Shown: positions 2,444 through 40,167 of the stretch, piece after piece
How positions within the stretch are numbered: the stretch's first letter is position 1
How the letters are laid out: each line of letters begins with the position of its first letter
NCBI GenBank assembly: GCA_965649825.1
Contig: OZ287699.1
Coordinates: forward strand, 1,332,477 to 1,396,476
Direction: 5' to 3'
DNA: 64,000 bases
DNA from: Penicillus capitatus
Taxonomy: Eukaryota; Plantae; Chlorophyta
Translations under genes and position numbers: made by a program
The notes under the pieces: model-generated
Told to the model about the DNA's origin: nothing
What the model saw: only the letters and a program-made list of their open reading frames with translations
Database searches by the model: none

Positions 2444-3482
2444 ATGTCTCGCCGACGCTTTATTGTCGATATCTGCGGAATGCGCTGTTTCGGACAACGT
2501 TCCAAAGTTCACACACGCTCCATAAACAGTCGCAAAAGGCTCTCTCGACGAAGGCTGCTCTCTCGTCGCGTTATGCCCACAGTCAAATGCATCGAAGACG
2601 TCGCCAAACTACTCACGGATGCCGGTCTAAGAAGATGCAGCCTCATTGTCGGAATCGATTTCACCGGAGCCAACGAAACGGGTTGCAGAACATCGTTCGC
2701 CGGTACCGTCTCGCTCTCTTCCGCACACGATACATTGAGTGCTCGATGCTGCAGGTCGAAATCTTCACGACCTTGGCGAAACTTCCAATCCTTTCCTCAT
2801 CGCTCTGAATACATTGCCACGCGTACTTGAAGGATTAGAAGATTCATGTCGCATGTTTTGTTACGGGTTTGGAGATACGACGACGAAAGAGCGTTCCGTT
2901 TTCGCTTTCTTCTCTGAGGATGCTATCGTGACCGAACACCGTAGTCTCGTGCAACGATACCGACAGATAGTGCCATTCATTGCCTTATCAGCGCCGACAT
3001 CGTGTGCACCATTAATTCGACAGGCCATGCGACGCGTGTATCAAAGTTGCATGCAGTTTCATTTGCTGCTGATTCTATTGGCAGGACCCATTTCGGCAAA
3101 CTGTCGAGCAGCCACAGCCGATGCCATTTTCCATGCCTCATATTTCCCCATCTCTATCGTAACAATCGGTATGGGCGATGGGCCATGGGATGAAATGCGT
3201 CGCTTTGAGGAGGAACTGCCTGATAGAAGATGGGAAAACTTCAGCTTTGTCGAATTTAAAGAATTTCGAAAACTCTCGAAGATGTCTGAAAAGGCCAGAG
3301 AGAAGGGCGAAGCCAAATTTGCGCTCCGGATCATGGAAGATCTTCCCTATCATTTCGAATGCATGAACGAATCTCGTGGCCCTGTCGATCAACAGAGTGT
3401 ATTCAACATCCTTTCCCGCATTCCAAATTCGATTCTGATGGGACCGCCTACAGATAACGATGAATCGAACATATGCTCTTGA
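2444..3482 (+). CDS. Copine/vWA-domain protein (RGLG-like, no RING), divergent paralog 1
   Basis: LIVGIDFTGAN, CYGFGD, PLSIV-like PISIVTIGMGDGPWDEM and WENFSFVEF motifs; 52-nt GT-AG intron 2703-2754 joins SFAG|RNLH. Confidence 0.85.
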
Positions 3483-4944: not shown

Positions 4945-5930
4945 CTACGGCAAAGGCATGTTGAAATGCACTGGAGGATCGATCAGGATGGATGGTGGAA
5001 TCTCGGCGATGATCGGACGGACCCGATTCTGGGCGTTCGGGCCCATCATCTCCTCTGCGATTCTGTACTGATCCGGCAGCTCCATCAGTACCTGCAGTGC
5101 GAAACTGGCTTCCCTTCTCTCTTCTGTCACCAGGGAGGGGTTGCTCATGATCCTGTTGTACTCGACGAACTGAAAGTTATCAAACCTTCTCTGAGGGATC
5201 GCGTCGTCAAAGGTCCTCATCTCGTCCCACGGCCCGTCACCGACGCCGACCATCACGATGGAGAGTGGAAAGAATGAGGCGTCGTAGATCGCCTGCATCG
5301 TGGCAGCCTTCCAGGCACTCGATATCTGACCGTCCGCCAGAATGAGAAGCAGATGGAATCGCATGCCTGTGTAGTAGACGCGGCGCATCGCCTGGCGGAT
5401 CAGCGGCTCGAAGGAAGTAGGACCGGACAGATCCACCAGTGGAGCAATCTGCCTGTACTTTGCGAGGAGGACATCCAGTCCCCTGGGCGCGTCGTCGTTT
5501 GGGAAGAATGAGAAAACCGAGTGCTCCCGAGTGTTGACGTCTCCAAACCCGTAGCAAGGGATCAGATTGTCGTCATCAAACGAGCTCAGCGTCCTGGCGA
5601 TGAGGCTAAGTGAGACCTGATACGGATTTTGGGGCCCGGATACCGAATGGAGACACTGCCCTACAGGGGGAAGGAGGATCGTCTCCATGGCGGTTCGACT
5701 GGCGACAGGACTAACCCCCAAAAGAGCGTTCTCCTGTCCACTCGTTGGATTTTGTAAAGTCGATACCAACAAGAAGCTGACAGGATTCGAGACCGGCTTT
5801 CCTTAGTTCTCTGGTGACCTCGTCTATCGTCTCGTACTGGTCCGGTATTCTTCTGAAGGGTCGGACATTCTGCTGCGGTCTTCGTTGCCTTCTATTTTCT
5901 GCATGCGACGCTCGGCGAGAACCGTGCATC
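4945..5930 (-). CDS. Copine/vWA-domain protein (RGLG-like, no RING), paralog 2
   Basis: LLVGIDFTKSNEWTG, LIPCYGFGD, SGPTSFEPLI, ILADGQI, GVGDGPWDEM, FDNFQFV; 55-nt GT-AG intron; start codon uncertain. Confidence 0.9.
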
Positions 5931-7335: not shown

Positions 7336-8428
7336 CTACGGTAAAGGCATGTTGAAATGCACTGGAGGATCGATCAGGATGGATGGTGGAATCTCGGCGA
7401 TGATCGGACGGACCCGATTCTGCGCGTTCGGGCCCATCATCTCCTCTGCGATTCTGTACTGATCCGGCAGCTCCATCAGTGCCTGCAGTGCGAAACTGGC
7501 TTCCCTTCTCTCTTCTGTCACCAGGGAGGGGTTGCTCATGATCCTGTTGTACTCGACGAACTGAAAGTTATCAAACCTTCTCTGAGGGATCGCGTCGTCA
7601 AACGTCCTCATCTCGTCCCACGGCCCGTCACCGACGCCGACCATCACGATGGAGAGTGGAAAGAATGAGGCGTCGTAGATGGCCTGCATCGTAGCAGTCC
7701 TCCAGGCACTCGATATCTGACCGTCCGCCAGAATGAGAAGCAGATGGAATCGCATGCCGGTGTGGTAGACGTGTCGCATTGCCTGGCGGATCAGCGGCTC
7801 GAAGGACGTAGGACCGGACAGATCCACCAGTGGAGCAATCTGCCTGTACTTTGCGAGGAGGGCATCCAGTCCCCTGGCGGCATCGTTGTTCGGAAAAAAG
7901 GAGAAAACTGAGTGCTCCCGAGTGTTGACGTCTCCAAACCCGTAGCAAGGGATCAGATTGTCGTCATCGAACGAGCTCAGCGTTCTGGCGATGAGGCCAA
8001 GGGAGACCTGATAGGGATTGGGAGGCCCGGATACCGAGTGCAGACACTGTCCTACACGCGAAGGAGAATCGTCTTCTTGACGGTTCTGAGCAGCGTCAAT
8101 GCTTACCCCCAAAGGAACGTTCTCCTGTCCACTCGTTGGATTTTGTAAAGTCGATGCCAACAAGAAGCTGACAGGATTCAAGGCCGGCTTTCCTTAGTTC
8201 TCTGGTGACCTCGTCAATCGTCTCGTACTGGTCCGGTATTCTTCTGAAGGGTCGACCGTGCTGCTGCGCACCTCGGTCAGTAGCCGCTGGTACAGCTCGC
8301 GTTTCATTCTTTATGCGGTTTCGTTTTGGCTCTTTTGTCCGACCTAACGTTAGTCCTCGTGTCTTGTTCGAAGTTCGGGCAGGTACATTAACGCTTAAGC
8401 AGACGCCCATGAAAACTGCAGGCGACAC
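7336..8428 (-). CDS. Copine/vWA-domain protein (RGLG-like, no RING), paralog 3; tandem duplicate of paralog 2
   Basis: Same motifs; collinear with paralog 2 at offset 2391; 55-nt intron at the same position; start codon uncertain. Confidence 0.9.
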
Positions 8429-26841: not shown

Positions 26842-28800
<1,959 letters not shown>

Positions 28801-29082
28801 TATCTGTACGACACGTGAATGGACGTTAAAAGGATTCTGTCTGCATCGACAACGTCGTTACGGTTTTCGAGAGAGAAGGGTGAGAGATGAACTATCTGCG
28901 TGATGTCCTCGGTGTAAAGTGGAAAAGAGTTCCCGAGAGTCTCTTGCATCCGTTACCGATGCAGAATGCAAGTCTGGAACAACTGAGAGGACAGCAGAGA
29001 GCTCAGTGCGAGGTAAGAGAATCAGACACGAGGTGAGATCGAAGAGGACGTGCATGTGGAATAGGATAAATGCAGTGGGCGA

Positions 29083-32000
29083 GTGGGTGGTCTGGCGAAA
29101 GTGTTTTCGACAGACGATGATCAGATGTCGTCATCATTGGATGACGTGCCTCTGATGGCATGGTCGGATCGGAATTATGAGGGATGCGAGGTCAGTGCGT
29201 CGACGAGAGAAGATGAGAGTACTTTCGAAGAAAAGAGTGAGATGATATTGGAAGAAGGCGAAGGGATATGGCGACACGATGATGTTGTACAGAGCACGTG
29301 CTCTGCTGATGATATGACGGTCGAAATGGAAAGCACCGTGGACGAAGTTCCGATCGACTTGGGGGAAGAAGACGCAGTGACGATAAGCTCAGACGAAAGT
29401 GCCACAGACAGGGCAATAGATGCGCCTTCGTCACTTCAATCATCCGTGCAAGGGACAACCGTTCATCCGAGCGAACCGTCGTCTGTCAACGGCGTTGCGT
29501 CAGAGGTGGCATCTTGTGGGCATGCAGAGAATGAGAGTTTGCAGGACGGGGGAAATAAGGACACGAGCTCTGTTCCGATGCGAGACCTGGCCGAACAGAT
29601 ACTCGAAACAGAAGACGACGCTATCGAGGTTCGAGCTCGGCTACACCACAACGATGCTGGAGAAGCGGCTGCGCCTGTTACGGATGTCGAAAATGAAGCG
29701 ATCGATGCGTCTTGTGTCCAGGAGTCACTTCCTGGCATCGCGTTCGATTTAAGCATTGGCCCTGTGCAGCAGCATCAAGCAACGGAGGCGCTGTCAGTGA
29801 GTGATGCAGAAGATGCGCGTTTACAGAATGCGAACAAGGATGAGAACATTTCTGCACGGACGGTGGGCGGCAGCCCTCCAGAACAGATGACTGAAACGGA
29901 GTATGCCATCGAGATCCAGGCCTATACGGATCGAGAAGAGACCACCGATGAGTCTCCTTGCGATGGCTCACTGGCTGATGGACCGATCGAATGGAGCAAA
30001 CCGCAAGAACAGTCATGTACTACACCCGAGGCACAATTTTGCAGTCGTGCAGAGAATGGAAATCTGCGGAACAGGGAAGATGACGACAAAACCTCTGGAG
30101 AAATGATAGGCGTTGTCGAAGAGATACCACCTGAAAGGAAAGAATGCGTGACTGAGGATCAAAGCCATGCTGAGTCCGAAGATGATACAGAAACAGCTGA
30201 TCGAAAGATGAAGATCGGAGAGGATGTCACCGATGGGCCTGCAATCCCCACTTTACAGGACAGAGCACTGGTTCCACTCAGCACGACATTTGTGCTGCAG
30301 CGCGCTGTGTCAGAGACACAGTCTTCCAACCATGCAGAAGATGCGAGTTCACAGAACGAGGACAACGATGGAAACGCTTCTCCGTTGATGTTAGGTCCTG
30401 CCAAACAGATCCCTCAAGGAGAAGACGATGCAATTGAGGCCCGAACGTATTCTGCAGAAGAAGAGGAGACAAAAGCATCGGACCCCATCACAAATGTAGA
30501 AGATGTGACAGCATCCGAGACTTCTTCTTCACTCCATGTCTCGCTGGATGTGACAGCATCCGACGTCAACCATTCCTCTACACATCAGCACGTTGTTTCA
30601 GATGCGGCATCATCCAATGACGCAGAGGACGTATGTTTCCAGAAAGAGGACGATGATCAGGAAACTGCTGCTCTGGCGACTGGCCTTGCTAAACAGACAT
30701 CAGAAAACGAGGAATGCGTGACCGAGGTCCGAGACGATGCAGAAGCAGCTGATACTGATAAGGATGGAACCAATAAAGGACTGGAAGTTTATGCATCGCC
30801 GGAGGTGACAGCTTTGGATTCGACCAAGTCATCCATACAACAATGTGCTGCATCAGAGGCGCCTTTATCGGCTCAGAGAGAGCACGAACCGTTGCAGAAC
30901 CAAGACAACAACAATGACAGCTCTAAAGAAATGATGGATGTTGCAGAACAGACACTAGACGACAAGGAATGTGTGACCGAGGCCCAAGACTGTCCTCAGC
31001 AAGAAGAAGACGTAGGATCAGTGGGCTCTCTCGAGCATGCCGAAAATGATGTGACGGACGAGCCTTTGGCCAACGTCTTAATGGACAAAGACTCAATCGA
31101 TTTGAGCCATCTCTCTGCAGAGCAGAATCCTGCATTGGAGACAAACTCTGTTAACCACGCAGAAAAAGAGAGCTTGCAGGACGAGAGCAACGATGAGAGG
31201 ACTTCTCCTCCGATGACGGATCCTGCTGAGCAGATACCTGAAACGGAAGATGATGCAATCGAAGTCCAAACCTATCCTCATCAAGAAGAGCAGGCAGAAG
31301 GAGCAGGCTTTGTCGAGGATATCGAAGAGGAGGCCACAGATGCGTCTTCTGTTCATCACTCGCTTCCTGGCACAACTGTGGATCTGAGCAAACAGCAGAC
31401 ACAAAACAGTCACGCATCGGAGGCAGAATTCTTCAGCGACAGTGACGATCAACAAGAGCACCTGGTTGAAGAAGAGCTCAACATCAAACGAGATCGATGG
31501 CTTGATACACTGGCCTGCGTTGAGAGAGCAGAGAAATCAGAGTCGGAACACGAGCAAACAGAGCAGGCAGAGATCGAAACATCCGAAGAGAAAGAGCTGC
31601 ATCCCTTTACTCCGGAAGAAGACAATTCTCCACTGCCGGGAGCACTCGATCGCCACTCAAAGGAGCACGAGGGTTCTGATATGGATACCAATGCAAAAGC
31701 ACCGGACGAAGCAGACGCGAATCGGATCGACGCCGTTGTTGGGAAGGATGCAGAAGAGGACCTCCCGATAGAGAAACCAACAATACGTGCGTCGCACCTG
31801 CCCGCACAACAGGAAGAAACAGAAAAGGAGGAAGTGCCCGAGGCGGTATCAGATCACGCATCTCTTGAGAAAACCCATCAGGTATAGAGAACGCATGATG
31901 TGACTGTTCTGCCTTTTTTGTCTGTTCGATGCTGGAGTTTGCTTGTTATGGCTGCAGGCGGGAGATCAGTATACGGAGCAACTTGTGGAACTGCTCAAGG

Positions 32001-32439
32001 CATACCGATCTCAGGAGAGTGATGCAGCCTCCTTGCCAATCTCGCAATGGCCCGACAAGGACGTTCAGCATTTGACAGACCTCGTTCAGAAACTGAAGCA
32101 AAACGCAAAACAGATGCATGATCAACCACCACTTACCACAGAAGAGATCCATGAATTTGCCCGTTACTTAGGCACAGCCTTGTTCTTTCGTCTAAGCATG
32201 GATCATCCATCGCATGCGATCTAGGGATGGATGTTGAGAGAGATCAAGATCTGCTCTACATCGCTGAGTGGGCTATGACAGCTGCACTGCCATCAGAGTG
32301 GTCCGTACATCACGATACCGAAGGCAACGAGTACTTCTACGATTCGAAGACGAAGACATCACAGTATGAACATCCGATGGACCAAACCTATAGAGATCTT
32401 TACCAGAGACTCAAACAGATTTCTTCGCCATCCGATTAG
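29083..32439 (+). CDS. Large acidic repeat protein with a C-terminal CEP164-type WW module
   Basis: 934-aa D/E-rich ORF followed by exons PLTTEEIHEFARYLG|MD...LLYIAEWAMTAALPSEW...EYFYD...QYEHPMD; start uncertain. Confidence 0.7.
29520..31390 (+). repeat. About seven degenerate ~80-95 aa intragenic repeats
   Basis: Recurring HAE.ESLQ...D...S..M...AEQI.E.EDDAIEV / AEQT...ECVTE cores near 29590, 29880, 30115, 30400, 30690, 30945, 31225. Confidence 0.75.
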
Positions 32440-34567
32440 GAACGTTGTTTTTTCGCCAATGCTGTCAATTGTTCGATGAATGTCTCTGCAGAGATCATCT
32501 CTGTTGCCCCGTAGACTATTTGCTTTGCCTTGGACTGACTTGTCGCCCAGAGGTCAAGAGACTCCCTCTCCAGATAGTTTCCGCCGCCAACCATAAACAC
32601 CACTGCTTCTTTGGAAGCGACTGTCCCATCAGATGGTTTCCCTGGCGGCGCTTTGGGATCGAAGGTGCAAAATCGATCAACACCTGAACCGCTCTCGGAT
32701 TTGCCTTCCATCACTGCCTCCACAGCTGCCACCACTGGTGACCTCTTAGCACCAGAAAGCAGGTTCTTCACGCTTTTGGACACCGACGAGATCCCTTGTG
32801 AAAAATTCTTCTCGGCCCATGACAACAGATTGCCTTCTGAACTGCTGTGCATCACTTTGCTCAGCCCAGCAGAGGACTGCAATGTGCCTCCGGCCAGTTG
32901 ATTAACACAGAGCGTCCTGACATAAGAAAAGACCACGCCAGCCACTCCGCCACCGCCGCCAAGAGCCTGCAGAATAGACTGCAGTTCAGACTCCGGAGGC
33001 AAGGGATTGGCAGACAGCAGGTAGACGCAAGCAAGACGCAGTTTGTCCTGCATCGTTCCTTCGCTGCCTTCCAGAAGCTTCATCATCGAAGCGAGATCAA
33101 CCTTGCCCGACACCATGTCTTCTTCCAGGTTAAAGTACTGATCCAGCAGCCTGCACAACGCCAAGAGTGATTCTCGTGAGCAGCAGTGGTCATTGAGAAC
33201 CTTGCTTTGATGATGCTGAGCAATGCTGTTGCAATGCTCGTGTGCTTGTCCAGTACTTTCTTCTTTTCAGTCAGTTCTGGAAGAGAGGACACAGCAGCCA
33301 TGAGGTTTTGTGTTTCGATGGGTCCATCATCTGAGACCGATCCCTGTGCTGGCTGTTGCGCTGTTTTTTGATTGATCTCTTCGACGGCCTTCTTGTAGTT
33401 CTGCAGCTGAATCTCCACCTCCTCGGCAATCTGACAAGAAACAGATGCTGCGTTTGTCGGCCATTAATAACACAGAGTCACACTTTTGGAAAGGAATAGG
33501 CTCCGCATTTCTGCCAGAAGAAATCCTCTTCATCCACGTCGTAATGTGTGACGGTCTTCCCTGCAGAGCTCTCCGTTACGTGGTTACTCTTTTCCTCGAC
33601 CCGGACTCTGTTGAGATGGAGATGTAAGAGATCCTGGACCAACGGTTTGTAAGACCAGGAATGCTGAAGAGCTCCAGAGAGATCAAAGTTTCGATCGAAT
33701 ACAATCATCAGGGGCCGGGAAAGAGAGGACAGCAGACCAGACGTCGCCTCGGCAAAGACATTCTGTCTTGTCTTCAGTGCCGTACGAATTCTGTCATCCA
33801 GTGCCGAACAGATGTGCTCCGCTGCGCCTCCAGGTGGGCATTTGAGAAGAGGAATGGCCCCTAACGTGGCGAAGACGCAGAACAGGGCATCGACGATCTG
33901 TTCCACGACCACCTCAATGTCGGTGTCTCGCGCAGTGGGATCGTTCAATTGGGTGTACACTTCTGGAAGACCCAACGAGAACAGCCCCTTTTCCAGTGAG
34001 ATGAAGGACATGTACTGGTCCTCGACGCGCGCAATTTTCTGTACGGCATTGGCTTTGACGGTTCCTTGAGCCAGCGATTCCAAAAGCGGCCGAGAAATGC
34101 GCGAGATGAAGGTGAGATCGTATTGGCCGTAGAGATCGGCGGATAAATCTTTGATAATGGCGTCGACATTTTCAGCATTTCCTTGCACGAGATACACAGC
34201 AGGAACCTGCACGATGCACGTGGTCTCCCCCTCTCGTTTTTGATGTCTGTGCACCGCACCTCCTGAATGGGTTGACGTTCGGATTCGATCGCCAGGTGTA
34301 ATGTGACGCCCAATCCGCGCAGCTGATTGACTTTGAGGAGCGGAGCAACAAGATGGCGGCCGAATGCGTCCAGAATCAGAACTTTGTAAGATGTCGTCGT
34401 CTCGTTTTCCGTCATCCCCAAAGGGCGTCTCCCCGTCGCTTCCTTTCCCTCTGCTGACCCACATTGCTTCAGCAGTCGCGTCAGACATGCTACAGCACGA
34501 TGTCGATCTGGCTTCTTTGAGAAATCGGCCGAGGGAGACCTATTTGTCGAGCCTTGATATCGAGCAT
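32436..34567 (-). CDS. SLY1: Sec1/Munc18 family protein Sly1 (SCFD1)
   Basis: MLDIKARQI, YKVLILD...GVTLHL, PAVYLV, FDRNFDL...HSWSY.PLVQD, LDKHTSIAT, FMVGGGNYLE, YGATEMI. Confidence 0.93.
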
Positions 34568-34630
34568 GGTTGTGTGGAGTAATAATGATGGCGTTGTGTT
34601 ATGATGGAGGGCATTTGTCTCATCAAATAC

Positions 34631-37600
34631 ATGGAAAATGGAGGGCGAAGCTGCGCCGTTGACGATGCATTCTATCACGACGTCGCCATCGAGAGCGGTA
34701 CCGCCTGCGTGTCGACATTGCACGACATCGACATCCGCCGACATCCACAGGACGTCCCGTCATCCCGCGATCATTTCGTAGCGCTGGCCATGTCCGACGA
34801 GGGACGCGTCCCTGCGCGCAATATCCGTACTTCTGGACAATGGTCGATTTCGAGCGTACCGAGCAAGGGTAGTACAGCGAACGAACATACACTTTCCGTG
34901 CATGACTCCACGTGCGCTTAGGAGACTGGGATGTTTGGAAAAGACAGTTACGCAAGGCGATGGAAAAGACGTCGGTTCAGATGGGTCTGTTTCTGTTGCT
35001 GACCTACGTCCTCTTCGTCAACAACATCGCCACCATCGCTCGTGCCTCAGATGTCGCCATGACTCGGATCAATGTGACGCTGGTGGTCTCGTTTGTCTTG
35101 TTTTGTGGAGAAATGGTCATCAACTTCTCGATAGCTTCCAAACGCGATCTCCTCTATAACGCGATGGAAGTCATTGGAACGCTCTCTATATTGATGGAGG
35201 TATCATGGGTGACGGATTTCTTGGGATTGGACTACAATATAGAGACAGAGAACGTATCAAAAACGGCAATCATTACTTCCAGAGCAGGCAATGTGGCATT
35301 CTCCTTCTCTGCAGGAATGCCGTGTGTATGTGCACTAGGGAGAGTGACGCGAATGATCCGTTTGATTCGTTTTGTTCGAGCTTTGAAGATTTTCATCATG
35401 ATCCATCGCTTTTTTGCGAGAAGAATTGACGATGGTGGGAAGGAACGGTCCATTGCACCATCGACGATTGGTAACAGTCTGAACGACCGAATTTCTCTAT
35501 TGGTGAGTGATGGATGTGCTCCCGATTGGAGAAGCTGCACCGAAGCTGGCATTCTAGGCAGCGTTTCTGGTGATGATGACAATGATGCTGGTATCGTTAT
35601 TGAATGTCCATGACTCTGATGACACGAACAGAGCCTTCATGCTCATTCTCTCCCTCATCGACACACACCAACTCGACATTATGGTCTCACACATAAAGAC
35701 GTCGGTCACTCTTTTCTGATCCGCATTTCCTCACCCTCTCTGTTCTGTTCAGTTTTGTAGATCAAACTGACGGGGGAATGGTTTTGAGATGGATTCGAGT
35801 TGGGGCGTACGAACAGGAGTGGAGAGATCCTGGATGCTGTTCCATCGATCGAGACATGTAACGGCATTTCGTATGCAGTCCATCTCTCTGGTGAAAAAGT
35901 GTGACCACTGTATGCAGTGTACATCTGAAGAGGGATGGCACACCTGAGGTGCAGATCGAACTGGACATCTCAAAGCAGAACATCACGACTGCCTATTTGG
36001 AGATTCTTCTTGGACTGGCTGTGATTGTCGAACTTTTTGTCTTCGTGGCACTGCTGCAGCGCAACACGTCACGCATCTTGATTGCACCATTGGAGCGCAT
36101 TTTTACCACTATTCAGAAGAATGCTCACATGATTGTCAGCGCTCTGGATACTCCTGACCATCATGTAGGGTGTCACATCACACATCTCCTCTCTTTGATG
36201 TGCTCTCATGTTCCAGAACAATGAACCATCATCAGAGATCGATACCATCGAGGCAGCCATTAGTAAAATGAGTAAATTAGTGGCACATATAAGTGCTACA
36301 GGTCAAGGTGGATCGCTTCGTTGCTGTTTATGCATCGCAATGATCGATGATGTGTTGGTGGTCGTGTAGGGAATCATGTGCTAAACAACTATGTACAGGA
36401 TGAGCACACAAGTGCAGATACAAGAGCATGGCTCAATGACTTCACTCAAAGTGCCAAAGTGACGAGTTTCAAAAGAAGAGCCAAATCAACAGAAACGCCA
36501 TCCACTGTGAGATCCCTTTCCGGCGGCGTCATAAAAGGATCATTGCTTTCTGGCGATACAGAAACCGACATTGGACCGCTCTCTGACGCACATACAATCT
36601 GAAGACCAGCAAAAACGCCGACAGCATATCTCAAGGCTCATGTCAGCCATTGACAGAACCGCACTCTGTTCCTGGCACTTTGATGTCACACAGTACACGT
36701 TTGAGGTCTCGATCTGCCAACATGACCTGTGGATAACCGACGGCGCATGACTCAGGAACTCACTGCAGCAATCTGTCTGATGTTTGAAGATCTGAAGCTG
36801 GCTTCGTTTGCCGACGTCTTTGAACAGTCAGATGTTCTGGTTCCGTTTGAATGTCTCTGGGATTTTATTACGAGGGTCCTCCTCATTGCTCTCCATCAGG
36901 TGACGCCTTCTAAGGGACTGTCTGTTGCAGGTAAGAGGATTCTACCATAATGTTCCGTATCATAATTTCTTTCACTGCTGCGATGTGGCACACGCCACTT
37001 TCCGTTTTATTAAACTCACCGAAAAGCGCACGGGAATGTCATCGCTGGAGAGCTTTGCACTGATGATCGCATCTATTTGTCACGATATGGATCATCCCGG
37101 TAGGTTCCGTACAGATATCTCTTGGTCTGGCTCTCTGTGTGATCGGCCATTGTGTGCCAGGACTGCAAAATGCTTTCCTGATTGACACCCATCATCATCT
37201 GGCCACTATGTATAACGACCGTTCCGTTTTGGAGAATCGACACGTTTCGTGTGTCTACTCACTCGTTTCTGAACATCCGGAAGCAGACGTCTTTCAGTAT
37301 TTGGACAAGAGCAGTTGGAAAGACGTTCGCAAGATCATTATCGAATCTATACTGCATACGGATATGGGAAAGCATTTTGGAATGGTATCCAAGGCGGAGA
37401 TCTTTTACGAACTGCATGGGGCTGCGATCAATGCAGATAACGGCAATTCACTCTTTGATGACCCAGGAGATCGTCTTTTTCTTTTCTCACTCTTATTGCA
37501 CTGTGCAGATATCTCAAATCCTGTCCGTCCCCTCAACGTTGCCGAAAAGTGAGAAACGATGTGACATGTACGCGCTCACTCTTTGGAGGACTTTTCTTCA

Positions 37601-38027
37601 GATGGGCAGATAATGTGTTGGACGAATTCTTTCTCCAAGGAGACGAAGAACGAAAACGTGGAATGCCAATTTCTCATTTGTGTGACCGAAACGTCACATC
37701 ACGTCCCACATCTCAAATCGACTTTCTAGAGTACATCATTGCTCCTCTCTTCTACCATGTCTGTACACTACCACACGTCACATCGTTTCTCACTCATTGA
37801 TGAGCTCTCTCTCCACTTAGGTCGTGCGTATCTTTCCTGAACTGCGAATGACGCTTATGCACTTGGAAGAAAACCGCCGCTTCTGGGACAAGATATATCT
37901 AAGAGAGATCGAGGACAAGATACCCAACAGCAGCGAAGAAAAGAACAAAGCCAATAAACGCTTAGAGGCCTTTCTTTCAAAATACAGAGATCTTTTCGAT
38001 GTGCATCATCCCACTTCTACAGGGTAA
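34631..38027 (+). CDS. Voltage-sensor-like (S1-S4) plus two TM helices plus class I cyclic-nucleotide phosphodiesterase fusion
   Basis: Contiguous exon chain; S4 SRAG|RVTRMIRLIRFVRALK; PDE motifs YHNFFH, HDMDHPG, LENRH, LHTDM, HCADISNP, EFFLQGD, SQIDF; start codon uncertain (34601, 34631 or 34790). Confidence 0.85.
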
Positions 38028-38191
38028 GCAGCTTCGATCTGTCGCGTCATCTCTGATCCTCGTGCACAGCTTGATCGGCAAGCAGTTGTCACAAGAGTGA
38101 GGGTGAAACGCGTGTATGTCAGTTGATTCTTACACCACATTCTGAGTGTGCACCACGAATAAGAACAAGAAATCCACGTGTAATCTCTTCA

Positions 38192-39080
38192 TTAGACGCA
38201 GTTCTCCCCAGAGAAACAGATGATGAGGAACAGAATGAGGGCAATCATCAGAATGATGCCGAGAATCGTTGCTTTCATTTTGAAATTCTGCCACCACATT
38301 TTTGAACGTAATCTCTGTCCCTGGTGTTGAAACTGGGCTGCCTGTGGAGTGACAGGATCGTCAGAGAACAGACAGAGATGGATGTCACGCTTACATGGTT
38401 TCGCAAGTCATCAGTCTTGTCGACCAAAACCTCTATCTTCTCACCCCTCTTCAGCACTTCCTCGATGTTCTCGACCATGATGTTCTTGACCTCGTCCACC
38501 TCAAACGTCACATCACGCACATCTCACTCTTTTCAAGCTAAGGAAGGAGCACACTTTTTTCTGAACGGAGGCAATTTTGGAAATCTCTTCTGGATGTTCT
38601 TGGCAGTATTCCATGTGCGTCTTTAGCACCGGACTGTCCATCGAACACAGCGGCATTGACAGCAATGTGATGAGATGTATGGGATGGGATGATACCCAAA
38701 GACACGGTCCAAGGATCCCTCTGTCGCAGAGAGTGCCTTGGCACCGTGTTTCTTCTGGAAGTCCGATGCCACACGTTGCAGGAATCCAAATGGAATGGTC
38801 CGTCCATACGACTCTTCAGCCACCGCCAGGTAGACTGTAGGCCACACAAAGCAAGGGAACCTCGCTTTCCTTGTGTGCACGACATCAGGGGACGCTCACT
38901 AAAATCTCCATCGTTTAGGAAATTGAATGTATGGCGGTCGCAATTGATAGTGAATTTCGCTTCCGGGTTGGATACGTTTTGCAGACACTCTATCGCTACC
39001 GTCTTAAAGTTGCCAGAGTATGCTGTGTATTCGGCCAGGACGGTCGTCCCGCGAGCAACGAAGCTGTAAATCAGCGGCAT
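38192..39080 (-). CDS. VAMP7: Longin R-SNARE, VAMP7/VAMP72-like
   Basis: [61 protein letters not shown]-terminal TM. Confidence 0.95.
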
Positions 39081-39186
39081 GGCGTCTTCGCCGTTTGCGT
39101 TGTCGGATGTGGCGTGCGCGTTGAAATTCTTGTTCTTCTCGTACAAAGGGACGTGACGTGGCTGAGCAGGTGGCACTTGTGGTCTG

Positions 39187-40167
39187 ATGTGTGAGCCGAC
39201 TTCGAATGCCGAGGCAGTTCGTGTTGACGTGGCGCATGAGCGTGGAAATGGCAAAGAAACGACGAACGTCTCGTCGACGGTGGAGTACTGGCAAAGCGCA
39301 CTGCAAGAATTCTGCAAAAATTCGCCGACACCGCCACCACCGCCACCACAGCACGCCTATGTCGCCAATCCATTAACGGCAACGCCGCCTGCTTACGGTC
39401 TGTGGTCTGGCCAAATTCCGCCCGTAAGTCTGCTCTCCTGCACGACGCCGAAAATCGTTCGGAATGCTATCAGCCTCTGTTAACGCCTTACGGTCCCATG
39501 CCGTTCTTCGGCGGATTCTTTCCGGGAGCTTATCCGATACATCCAGCAGCGACGGTGCCGACGGTCTCGCTGCCAGCAGTGAAACCAGAAATGCACGAAG
39601 ACGGTGAGAAGGGAACACAAAGAAATGATCTACAGACGCCGAAACGCGTAAGGCGCTGCGAAATGTTGACACCCGACGATGTCTCAGCCCTATGTGCCAG
39701 CAGAGGAAGACGCCAACGTCAACAGCACCGCCGCCGCCACACTTCGTTCCTACACAGTCCCATCCATCGCCTCCTCTAAATCGACGTCTGGCATCGATCG
39801 ACCTACAACGGCTTCGATGGAGATGTGTACAGGGGAGGAGACACCGTGGCCCAAAATCGATGAAGAACTGAACCCGTCTGTTGTTCGAGTCTGTACATTA
39901 GTCACTCGATGCTTAAATACTAACCACTTTGTGATGTGACAGGACGATCGAGAACTGAAAAAAGAACGAAGAAAGCAGTCGAATCGCGAATCGGCGCGCC
40001 GATCTCGGCTTCGGAAGCAGCGTGAATGCGAAGCTCTTCAGAAACAGGTCCAAGACATCACGGCGCTCAATCAATGTCTTGAACAGGAAATCGCTCAACT
40101 CAAGCAGCGACTCGCCGAAGTGGAACGCGAAAATGAGCAACTCAAGGAAACGTGGTCGGCACACTAA
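39187..40167 (+). CDS. bZIP transcription factor, G-box binding factor-like
   Basis: Pro-rich N-terminus (PYGPMPFFGG..P.AYPIHP); DDRELKKERRKQSNRESARRSRLRKQ plus leucine zipper. Confidence 0.9.

Follow-up and report, generated by a model that had tools for sequence, protein, structure and literature searches.

A window of 64,000 nucleotides from the green alga Penicillus capitatus (assembly GCA_965649825.1, contig OZ287699.1, positions 1,332,477 to 1,396,476 of the forward strand) carries on its plus strand, at 34631 to 38027, a spliced gene for a putative voltage-sensing cyclic-nucleotide phosphodiesterase. In the encoded protein, a voltage-sensing domain (VSD), a transmembrane (TM) hairpin, a helical module and a class I phosphodiesterase (PDE) are joined on one chain, and we are nearly certain of this whole architecture. 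Homology and conservation point to control of the PDE by voltage as the best-supported mechanism, and the reading that membrane voltage regulates cyclic-nucleotide hydrolysis by this protein is given a probability of roughly 60%. By hydropathy and inspection, the layout from the N to the C terminus is S1-S4, a basic cytosolic linker, TM5, a loop of 89 residues, TM6, a helix-linker-helix segment, a linker rich in Ser, Thr and Lys, and the class I PDE, with the following features:

34972-35040, plus strand: S1 helix, residues 97-119, from hydropathy, with a predicted local distance difference test (pLDDT) score above 90 in AlphaFold2 (AF2), and Asn114 at the position of the family's conserved Asp
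35071-35139, plus strand: S2 helix, residues 130-152, with F140-C-G-E143, from the Kv1.2 alignment and family conservation
35152-35223, plus strand: S3 helix, residues 157-180, with the acidic residues E162 and E172, at positions where Asp or Glu is conserved in relatives
35275-35400, plus strand: S4 helix, residues 198-222, TSRAGRVTRMIRLIRFVRALKIFIM, split by intron 2 and carrying seven basic residues
35401-35481, plus strand: cytosolic S4-TM5 linker, residues 223-249, basic and amphipathic, with an 'APS.IG..L' motif conserved in the alignment
35482-35605, plus strand: TM5, residues 250-272, spanning intron 3, with a hydropathy of 2.49 and modelled as a long helix in the homologue
35606-35984, plus strand: extracellular loop or domain, residues 273-361, spanning introns 4 and 5, with no selectivity-filter motif
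35985-36059, plus strand: TM6, residues 362-386, with a hydropathy of 2.65
36060-36291, plus strand: juxtamembrane helix (RILIAPLERIF..., residues 387-416), short linker and second helix SEIDTIEAAISKMSKLVAHI (residues 427-446), spanning intron 6
36661-37991, plus strand: class I PDE catalytic region, with the PDEase_I core (residues 595-836) at 36958-37859

All the elements that the original prediction had read from the DNA, namely four N-terminal TM helices, TM5, a loop, TM6 and the coiled segment SEIDTIEAAISKMSKLVAHI, are present in this layout.

Comparison of profiles shows the predicted S1-S4 domain to be homologous to the voltage sensors of channels, of the Kv type. The profile was restricted to the VSD of 30 family members, with the window sequence first, and was preferred over an alignment dominated by PDE columns. 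Against the PDB, it matched Kv1.2 (E = 2e-6), Shaker (7e-6), Kv1.3 (2e-5), Cav1.x (approximately 5e-4), domain IV of Nav (approximately 0.01) and HCN1 (0.02), and every entry among the 60 matches listed (61 at E ≤ 1) is a voltage-gated channel. The alignment places F140 and E143 of S2 on F233 and E236, the charge-transfer residues of Kv1.2, and R200, R203, R206, R209, R212, R215 and K218 of S4 on R294, R297, R300, R303, K306, R309 and K312. As first described, every third position of S4 is basic over a run of seven residues, and when the protein was shuffled 20,000 times no such run was reached (approximately 1.4e-4 runs expected per protein). The S2 F..E pair (FCGE) and the acidic residue in S3 that had been noted are likewise present, the former in the register of Kv1.2. 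Across 113 relatives from distant lineages, R1-R4 of S4 are near-invariant, while column counts give the S2 Phe in 110, the S2 Glu in 112, and an Asp or Glu at both S3 acidic positions (E162 and E172) in 112.

The Pfam domain Ion_trans was matched by 33 of 66 relatives and PDEase_I by 26 of the 66. All ten full-length relatives have a C-terminal PDE; six of them also match Ion_trans, three above the gathering score (P0012 with 36.4 bits, P0023 with 29.5 and P0014 with 26.8). The co-occurrence of Ion_trans and PDEase_I, which the original prediction had proposed as a check, is thus found in six of ten. An AF2 model of S1-S4 of the window protein, made from the unspliced exon translation and including 17 residues encoded by an intron, reached a pLDDT of 76 overall and above 90 for S1-S3. 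With this model, the best plausible neighbours returned by Foldseek were the VSDs of Ci-VSP, Nav1.8, TPC1, Kv3.1 and CatSper, with template-modelling scores (TM-scores) of 0.43-0.60; the match to Ci-VSP had a probability of 0.60-0.72 and a TM-score of 0.47-0.60.

On sequence grounds, the catalytic domain is a cyclic-nucleotide PDE of class I whose active site is intact, and it is predicted to hydrolyze cyclic adenosine or guanosine monophosphate (cAMP/cGMP). PDEase_I (PF00233) was matched by residues 595-836 with 257 bits versus a cut-off of 24.8 (E = 2.4e-76), over positions 1-236 of the 238 in the profile. Among solved structures, human PDE4D is the nearest (E = 3e-61), and YHNFFH (595), HDMDHPG (636), HTDM, HCADISNP (755) and the invariant Gln, Q809 (SQIDF from 808), all align to it, in agreement with the earlier statement that the metal-binding motifs are intact. 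The structural model of full length is that of the homologue P0008, which is 36% identical to the window protein and has a pLDDT of 80.5; its PDE domain matches PDE9 and PDE4 at a TM-score of approximately 0.9, and PDE catalytic domains are all that Foldseek retrieves with the full-length model. Downstream of S4, the Pfam scan detected PDEase_I only, with no PTEN-like phosphatase or C2 domain, no class III cyclase and no rhodopsin domain.

The two halves of the protein belong to a single gene. A single long open reading frame (ORF) is absent from 34400-38300, and the exons of the splice model join into one uninterrupted ORF of 891 codons, from the ATG at 34631 to the TAA at 38025-38027, reproducing exactly the coordinates given for the gene in the original prediction. 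All 13 introns are of 50-62 nt, with GT-AG borders in 12 and GC-AG in one. The model was compared with the orthologous, syntenic locus of a close relative (L004), which has the same genes as neighbours and lies on an ENA contig of 824 kb.

34631-38027, plus strand: whole coding sequence, 14 exons and 13 introns, 891 residues, with a likely alternative start at ATG 34790
34631-34868, 34922-35287, 35339-35502, 35558-35700, 35753-35857, 35918-36164 and 36217-36307, plus strand: exons 1-7 of the splice model
36370-36506, 36562-36705, 36756-36875, 36931-37099, 37161-37548, 37602-37758 and 37821-38027, plus strand: exons 8-14 of the splice model
35288-35338, plus strand: intron 2, 51 nt, in frame, GC-AG, splitting the Gly202 codon and interrupting S4
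34790-34792, plus strand: putative true start codon, M54 (MSDEGRV...), at which the ORFs of P0002 and P0005 begin and upstream of which L004 has an in-frame TGA

Identity between the window and L004 is 92.6% in the exons, where 2,676 nt contain 7 gap columns, versus 80% in the introns, where approximately 690 nt contain 44, and the exon differences fall on codon positions 1, 2 and 3 in numbers of 37, 22 and 139. The homologues, many of 850-950 residues, are colinear with the window model from residue ~40 or ~85 to 878 (P0014 is 37% identical and P0008 36%). Full-length homologues derived from transcriptomes include P0008 and P0030 (both MMETSP) and those of Pyramimonas obovata, Chattonella subsalsa and Oxyrrhis marina, while P0010 is a single ORF of 902 codons on a compact, eukaryote-like metagenome contig. 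It could be argued that the gene for a small VSD membrane protein and an adjacent PDE gene were wrongly joined by the splice model, and one annotation does speak for this: on scf_627 of Ostreobium quekettii, the EukProt EVM annotation divides the orthologue into two models, P0001 (VSD only) and P0004 (TM6-PDE). Nonetheless, the NCBI model of the same orthologue, CAD7698238.1, is fused, with 915 residues; the exons of the membrane half and of the enzyme half are parted only by introns of 52-60 nt with splice consensus; the drop in conservation and the indels relative to L004 fall exactly within the predicted introns; and the transcript-derived and intronless homologues are single ORFs. On these comparisons of sequence, an artefact of two genes is effectively excluded, and the earlier claim of one spliced gene stands. 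Split models such as the Ostreobium pair would hide the fusion from censuses of domain architecture.

Two details of the gene model deserve attention. The seventh charge of S4 (R200) requires the removal of intron 2, given that this in-frame intron of 51 nt with a GC donor interrupts S4. The intron is free of stops and encodes 17 residues if retained; an ORF-based gene caller would retain it, adding these residues just before S4. Taken alone, this splice call is weak, and it is supported by the related genomes: introns at the same position shift the frame in L001 (where the donor is GT), L002 and L004, and in P0005, the read-through ORF of L004, a stop lies within intron 2. In L004 the orthologous intron is of 44 nt and therefore cannot be coding. 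The Ostreobium orthologue reads ...ITSRAGRVTRLVRLVRFVRALK at the S4 splice. The intron of L004 is also GC-AG, so that the non-canonical donor is kept between the window and L004 in introns of different length (51 and 44 nt).

The second detail concerns the start of translation. Given that the longer ORF, which starts at 34631, is interrupted in L004 by an in-frame TGA at its codon 36, and that conservation across species begins near M54, with the homologues aligning to the window protein only from approximately residue 40-55 on, the ATG at 34790 may be the real start rather than that at 34631. The first 159 nt (34631-34789) are strongly conserved with L004 at the DNA level despite this TGA. 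They may represent a 5' untranslated region or a conserved upstream ORF instead of a coding N terminus.

No pore domain is detectable in the predicted protein. In all relatives scanned, the Ion_trans matches end at or before position 118 of the 241 in the profile, that is, at the end of S4 and before S5-P-S6. The profile of TM5-loop-TM6 found no channel in the PDB, with chance matches only (E > 0.2), versus 61 for the VSD profile, and no GYG/GFG or T-x-E/D-x-W filter motif was seen when the window sequence was read. In the P0008 model the loop is formed by two helices and four strands with a pLDDT of approximately 80-90, and not by a pore helix and a filter. The absence of a K-channel selectivity filter, as originally stated, is borne out by these results. 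They also bear on the reading of the protein as a fusion of channel and enzyme, in which the six TM helices would form a voltage-gated channel, or the VSD would itself conduct as in Hv1, and the ion or the gating would regulate the PDE. The 6-TM topology, the precedent of the alveolate fusions of channel and cyclase (PMC12414865) and the fusion of relatives of the window VSD to cyclases all speak for such a protein. In addition to the missing pore, the Asp that the family conserves in S1, at the position used for selectivity in Hv1, is an Asn in the window protein, and a channel fusion is considered highly improbable. The TM5-loop-TM6 module was likewise rejected as a known sensor domain, having no Pfam match and no PDB match beyond chance.

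The segment that follows TM6 is described here only as a conserved helical transducer. In the P0008 model, TM6 continues into the cytosol as a helix of 60 residues. The linker between the juxtamembrane helix and the second helix is short and made of His and acidic residues, and the Pro and the motifs of this helix-linker-helix are conserved in the family alignments. The Ser/Thr/Lys-rich linker before the PDE is poorly conserved. The 'P-L-E-R' and 'E-I-x-x-I-E-A-A' helices had raised the possibility of a HAMP domain, which was rejected: the post-TM6 segment had no Pfam match to HAMP in three species, and the family profile of the helix-linker-helix found no HAMP protein in the PDB, its sole match being a designed minibinder (E = 0.74). 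The absence of support from Pfam and the PDB, together with the acidic connector of variable length, led to this membership being dropped. A conserved 'D..T..WL' motif occurs at residues ~455-475 (window ~36385-36450), after the second helix and ahead of the disordered linker rich in Ser, Thr and Lys, and its Thr is near-invariant in 16 family members.

If voltage controls the enzyme, a change in membrane potential would move the seven S4 charges past the charge-transfer site formed by the Phe and Glu of S2, and the S4-TM5 linker, short and cytosolic, would pass this movement on to the TM5/TM6 hairpin. The signal would then run down the long helix formed by TM6 and the juxtamembrane segment and alter the arrangement of the PDE catalytic domains, which are probably dimers as in other class I PDEs, and hence their activity. 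The outcome would be that membrane voltage sets the rate of cyclic-nucleotide breakdown.

Several results weigh against this reading. The window protein, spliced or unspliced, has no match to Ion_trans in Pfam even at E ≤ 10 and none to the PDB by phmmer, so that the VSD homology rests on the family profile; a profile of two species found only the S4 of Kv3.1 in the PDB, with E = 1.2. In the alignment to Kv1.2, the register of the S3 acidic residues relative to D259 is off by three residues, one helical turn, so that their equivalence is not settled. The conserved S1 Asp is replaced by Asn114. None of the Foldseek matches of the S1-S4 model, which carries the 17 intron residues, reached E ≤ 0.001, the best having E = 0.24. 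Moreover, the control of the PDE had been proposed to be direct, and in the sense of the voltage-sensing phosphatases (VSPs) this does not hold: where VSPs have a short linker between S4 and the enzyme, here TM5, the extracellular domain, TM6 and approximately 200 cytosolic residues intervene, and for this reason none of the known coupling mechanisms can be carried over directly. The real input, or an additional one, could also be the extracellular domain.

Indeed, a PDE that is ligand-gated or constitutively active at the membrane would have the extracellular alpha/beta domain as its sensor, with S1-S4 a vestigial VSD serving in anchoring or oligomerisation. Two TM helices that enclose an extracellular domain and lead into a juxtamembrane helix resemble the layout of receptors, such as the bacterial 2-TM receptors; the domain is folded in the homologue model, the TM5-loop-TM6 module is conserved family-wide, and the loss of the acidic residue of S1 in the window protein would also fit. 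Against this, the S4 charges, the S2 Phe and Glu and the S3 acidic residues are near-invariant across the 113 relatives, which argues that the VSD is not a mere anchor; the seven charges stand in the exact Kv register, and no known family of ligand-binding domains was matched by the extracellular domain in Pfam or the PDB. A vestigial VSD seems unlikely on this balance. Both inputs may also act together, as a coincidence detector in which S1-S4 would sense voltage and the folded domain between TM5 and TM6 a ligand or ion outside the cell, the two jointly setting the PDE via the shared helical transducer, which we put forward as a tentative possibility.

The protein belongs to a widespread family of VSD-PDEs in protists, for which no published description was found in the literature searched. 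When 1.84 billion representative proteins were searched with a profile of the S1-TM5 module, approximately 700 relatives were obtained at 50% clustering. Only three proteins were returned when the 16-sequence N-terminal alignment was used as profile, probably because low-complexity linkers swamped the candidates. The named members are from green algae, one raphidophyte and one dinoflagellate, and the nearest named orthologue is that of Ostreobium quekettii, with approximately 50% identity. Public databases label the homologues 'hypothetical protein', 'unnamed protein product', 'Phosphodiesterase' or 'cAMP-specific phosphodiesterase 4'. This confirms the suspicion that homologues sit unannotated in algal proteomes, given that Ostreobium, Cymbomonas, Pyramimonas, Chattonella and Oxyrrhis carry them under such generic names. 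The original prediction knew of no functionally characterised fusion of voltage sensor and PDE, and no description of a VSD-PDE was found in the full-text literature, the coverage of which is without most subscription journals.

The membrane and helical modules also occur with another enzyme. Hidden Markov models were built from PDE-bearing members only and searched against the proteins of relatives retrieved in the analysis. Among the 84 proteins of at least 450 residues in the hit list, the VSD was detected in 83, the hairpin module in 67 and the helical module in 58. The VSD, TM5-loop-TM6 and helix-linker-helix stand in the same order before a class III cyclase in P0066, P0069 (Rhodelphis marinus) and P0077; in a further cyclase of Rhodelphis marinus, P0079, the VSD and helix-linker-helix models match and the TM5-loop-TM6 model does not. 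In P0050, P0095 and P0135 the PDE is N-terminal to the sensor. The VSD and TM5-loop-TM6 were detected in all three, and the helix-linker-helix model matches P0095, not P0050 or P0135. That this chassis is modular, with PDE or cyclase as output, is as expected of a device for signal input. RGS and GAF domains were each seen in single relatives of the VSD chassis.

To our knowledge, gating of an enzyme by a voltage sensor is well characterised only in the VSPs, and the channel-cyclases of ciliates and apicomplexans are the only link between a voltage sensor and cyclic nucleotides. The VSPs (Ci-VSP/TPTE) share with the window protein a pore-less S1-S4 sensor and a cytosolic enzyme on the same chain, and Ci-VSP is among the best neighbours of the S1-S4 model. 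Their enzyme is a PTEN-like phosphoinositide phosphatase rather than a class I PDE, and the window protein, which would act in a similar way, is not a VSP, given that it has no PTEN domain. The closest sensors are those of Kv1 and Shaker, the best matches of the VSD profile, with the S2 Phe and Glu and R1-K7 of S4 in register; unlike these channels, the window protein has neither the S5-P-loop-S6 pore nor the T1 domain, and has a C-terminal enzyme. In the choanoflagellate RhoPDE, a light-absorbing rhodopsin of 8 TM helices and a class I PDE are fused via a helical linker. Here too a membrane sensor is joined through a helical linker to the same class of enzyme, and a physical stimulus would control the hydrolysis of cyclic nucleotides; the window protein differs in having a voltage sensor and a 2-TM hairpin and, by Pfam, no rhodopsin domain. 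The sperm Na+/H+ exchanger SLC9C1, in which a VSD regulates a transporter and a cyclic-nucleotide-binding domain is present, is alike in combining a VSD with a non-channel effector in one polypeptide. It differs in its transporter effector and cyclic-nucleotide-binding domain, in an unrelated domain order and in having no PDE. The fusions of channel and adenylyl cyclase of Paramecium, Tetrahymena and Plasmodium (Schultz 1992; Weber 2004) have, as far as the cited account describes them, a K+-channel pore and synthesise cAMP (PMC12414865). These, too, are protist proteins with an S4-containing, channel-like N terminus on a cyclic-nucleotide enzyme, and some relatives of the window VSD are fused to cyclases; the window protein, in contrast to what that account describes, has no detectable pore and is predicted to degrade cyclic nucleotides.

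The gene lies in a conserved order of genes, common to 27135-39300 of the window and 2161-13721 of L004, in which its neighbours are:

First in the conserved order, minus strand: bifunctional DHFR-TS
29083-31887, plus strand: very acidic repetitive protein of approximately 930-1050 residues
32436-34420, minus strand: Sec1-family gene, kept as a neighbour in L001 and L002 too
Approximately 38200-39300, minus strand: longin/synaptobrevin R-SNARE, after the VSD-PDE gene (plus strand)

Elsewhere in the window, the ORFs at 2739-3482 (plus), 4945-5772 (minus) and 7336-8181 (minus) are paralogous, having the motifs 'CYGFGD...HSVF.FF' and 'FHLLLIL.DG.IS' in common, and the two on the minus strand are nearly identical. 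This looks like a local expansion of a gene family, possibly copine- or vWA-like. Scans of the window with Rfam and for tRNAs found nothing.

If voltage does regulate these enzymes, many protists would couple membrane potential directly to cAMP/cGMP, via VSD-PDEs and via VSD-cyclases built on the same chassis. Should the two-input possibility hold, many unicellular eukaryotes could turn electrical signals into cyclic-nucleotide ones, in both directions and with neither Ca2+ nor channels in between. A VSD-PDE would offer a new system for following how a TM hairpin relays S4 motion to a soluble enzyme, and could serve as a genetically encoded, voltage-controlled PDE for research. A function would also be assigned to hundreds of proteins that are now labelled 'hypothetical' or 'phosphodiesterase'.

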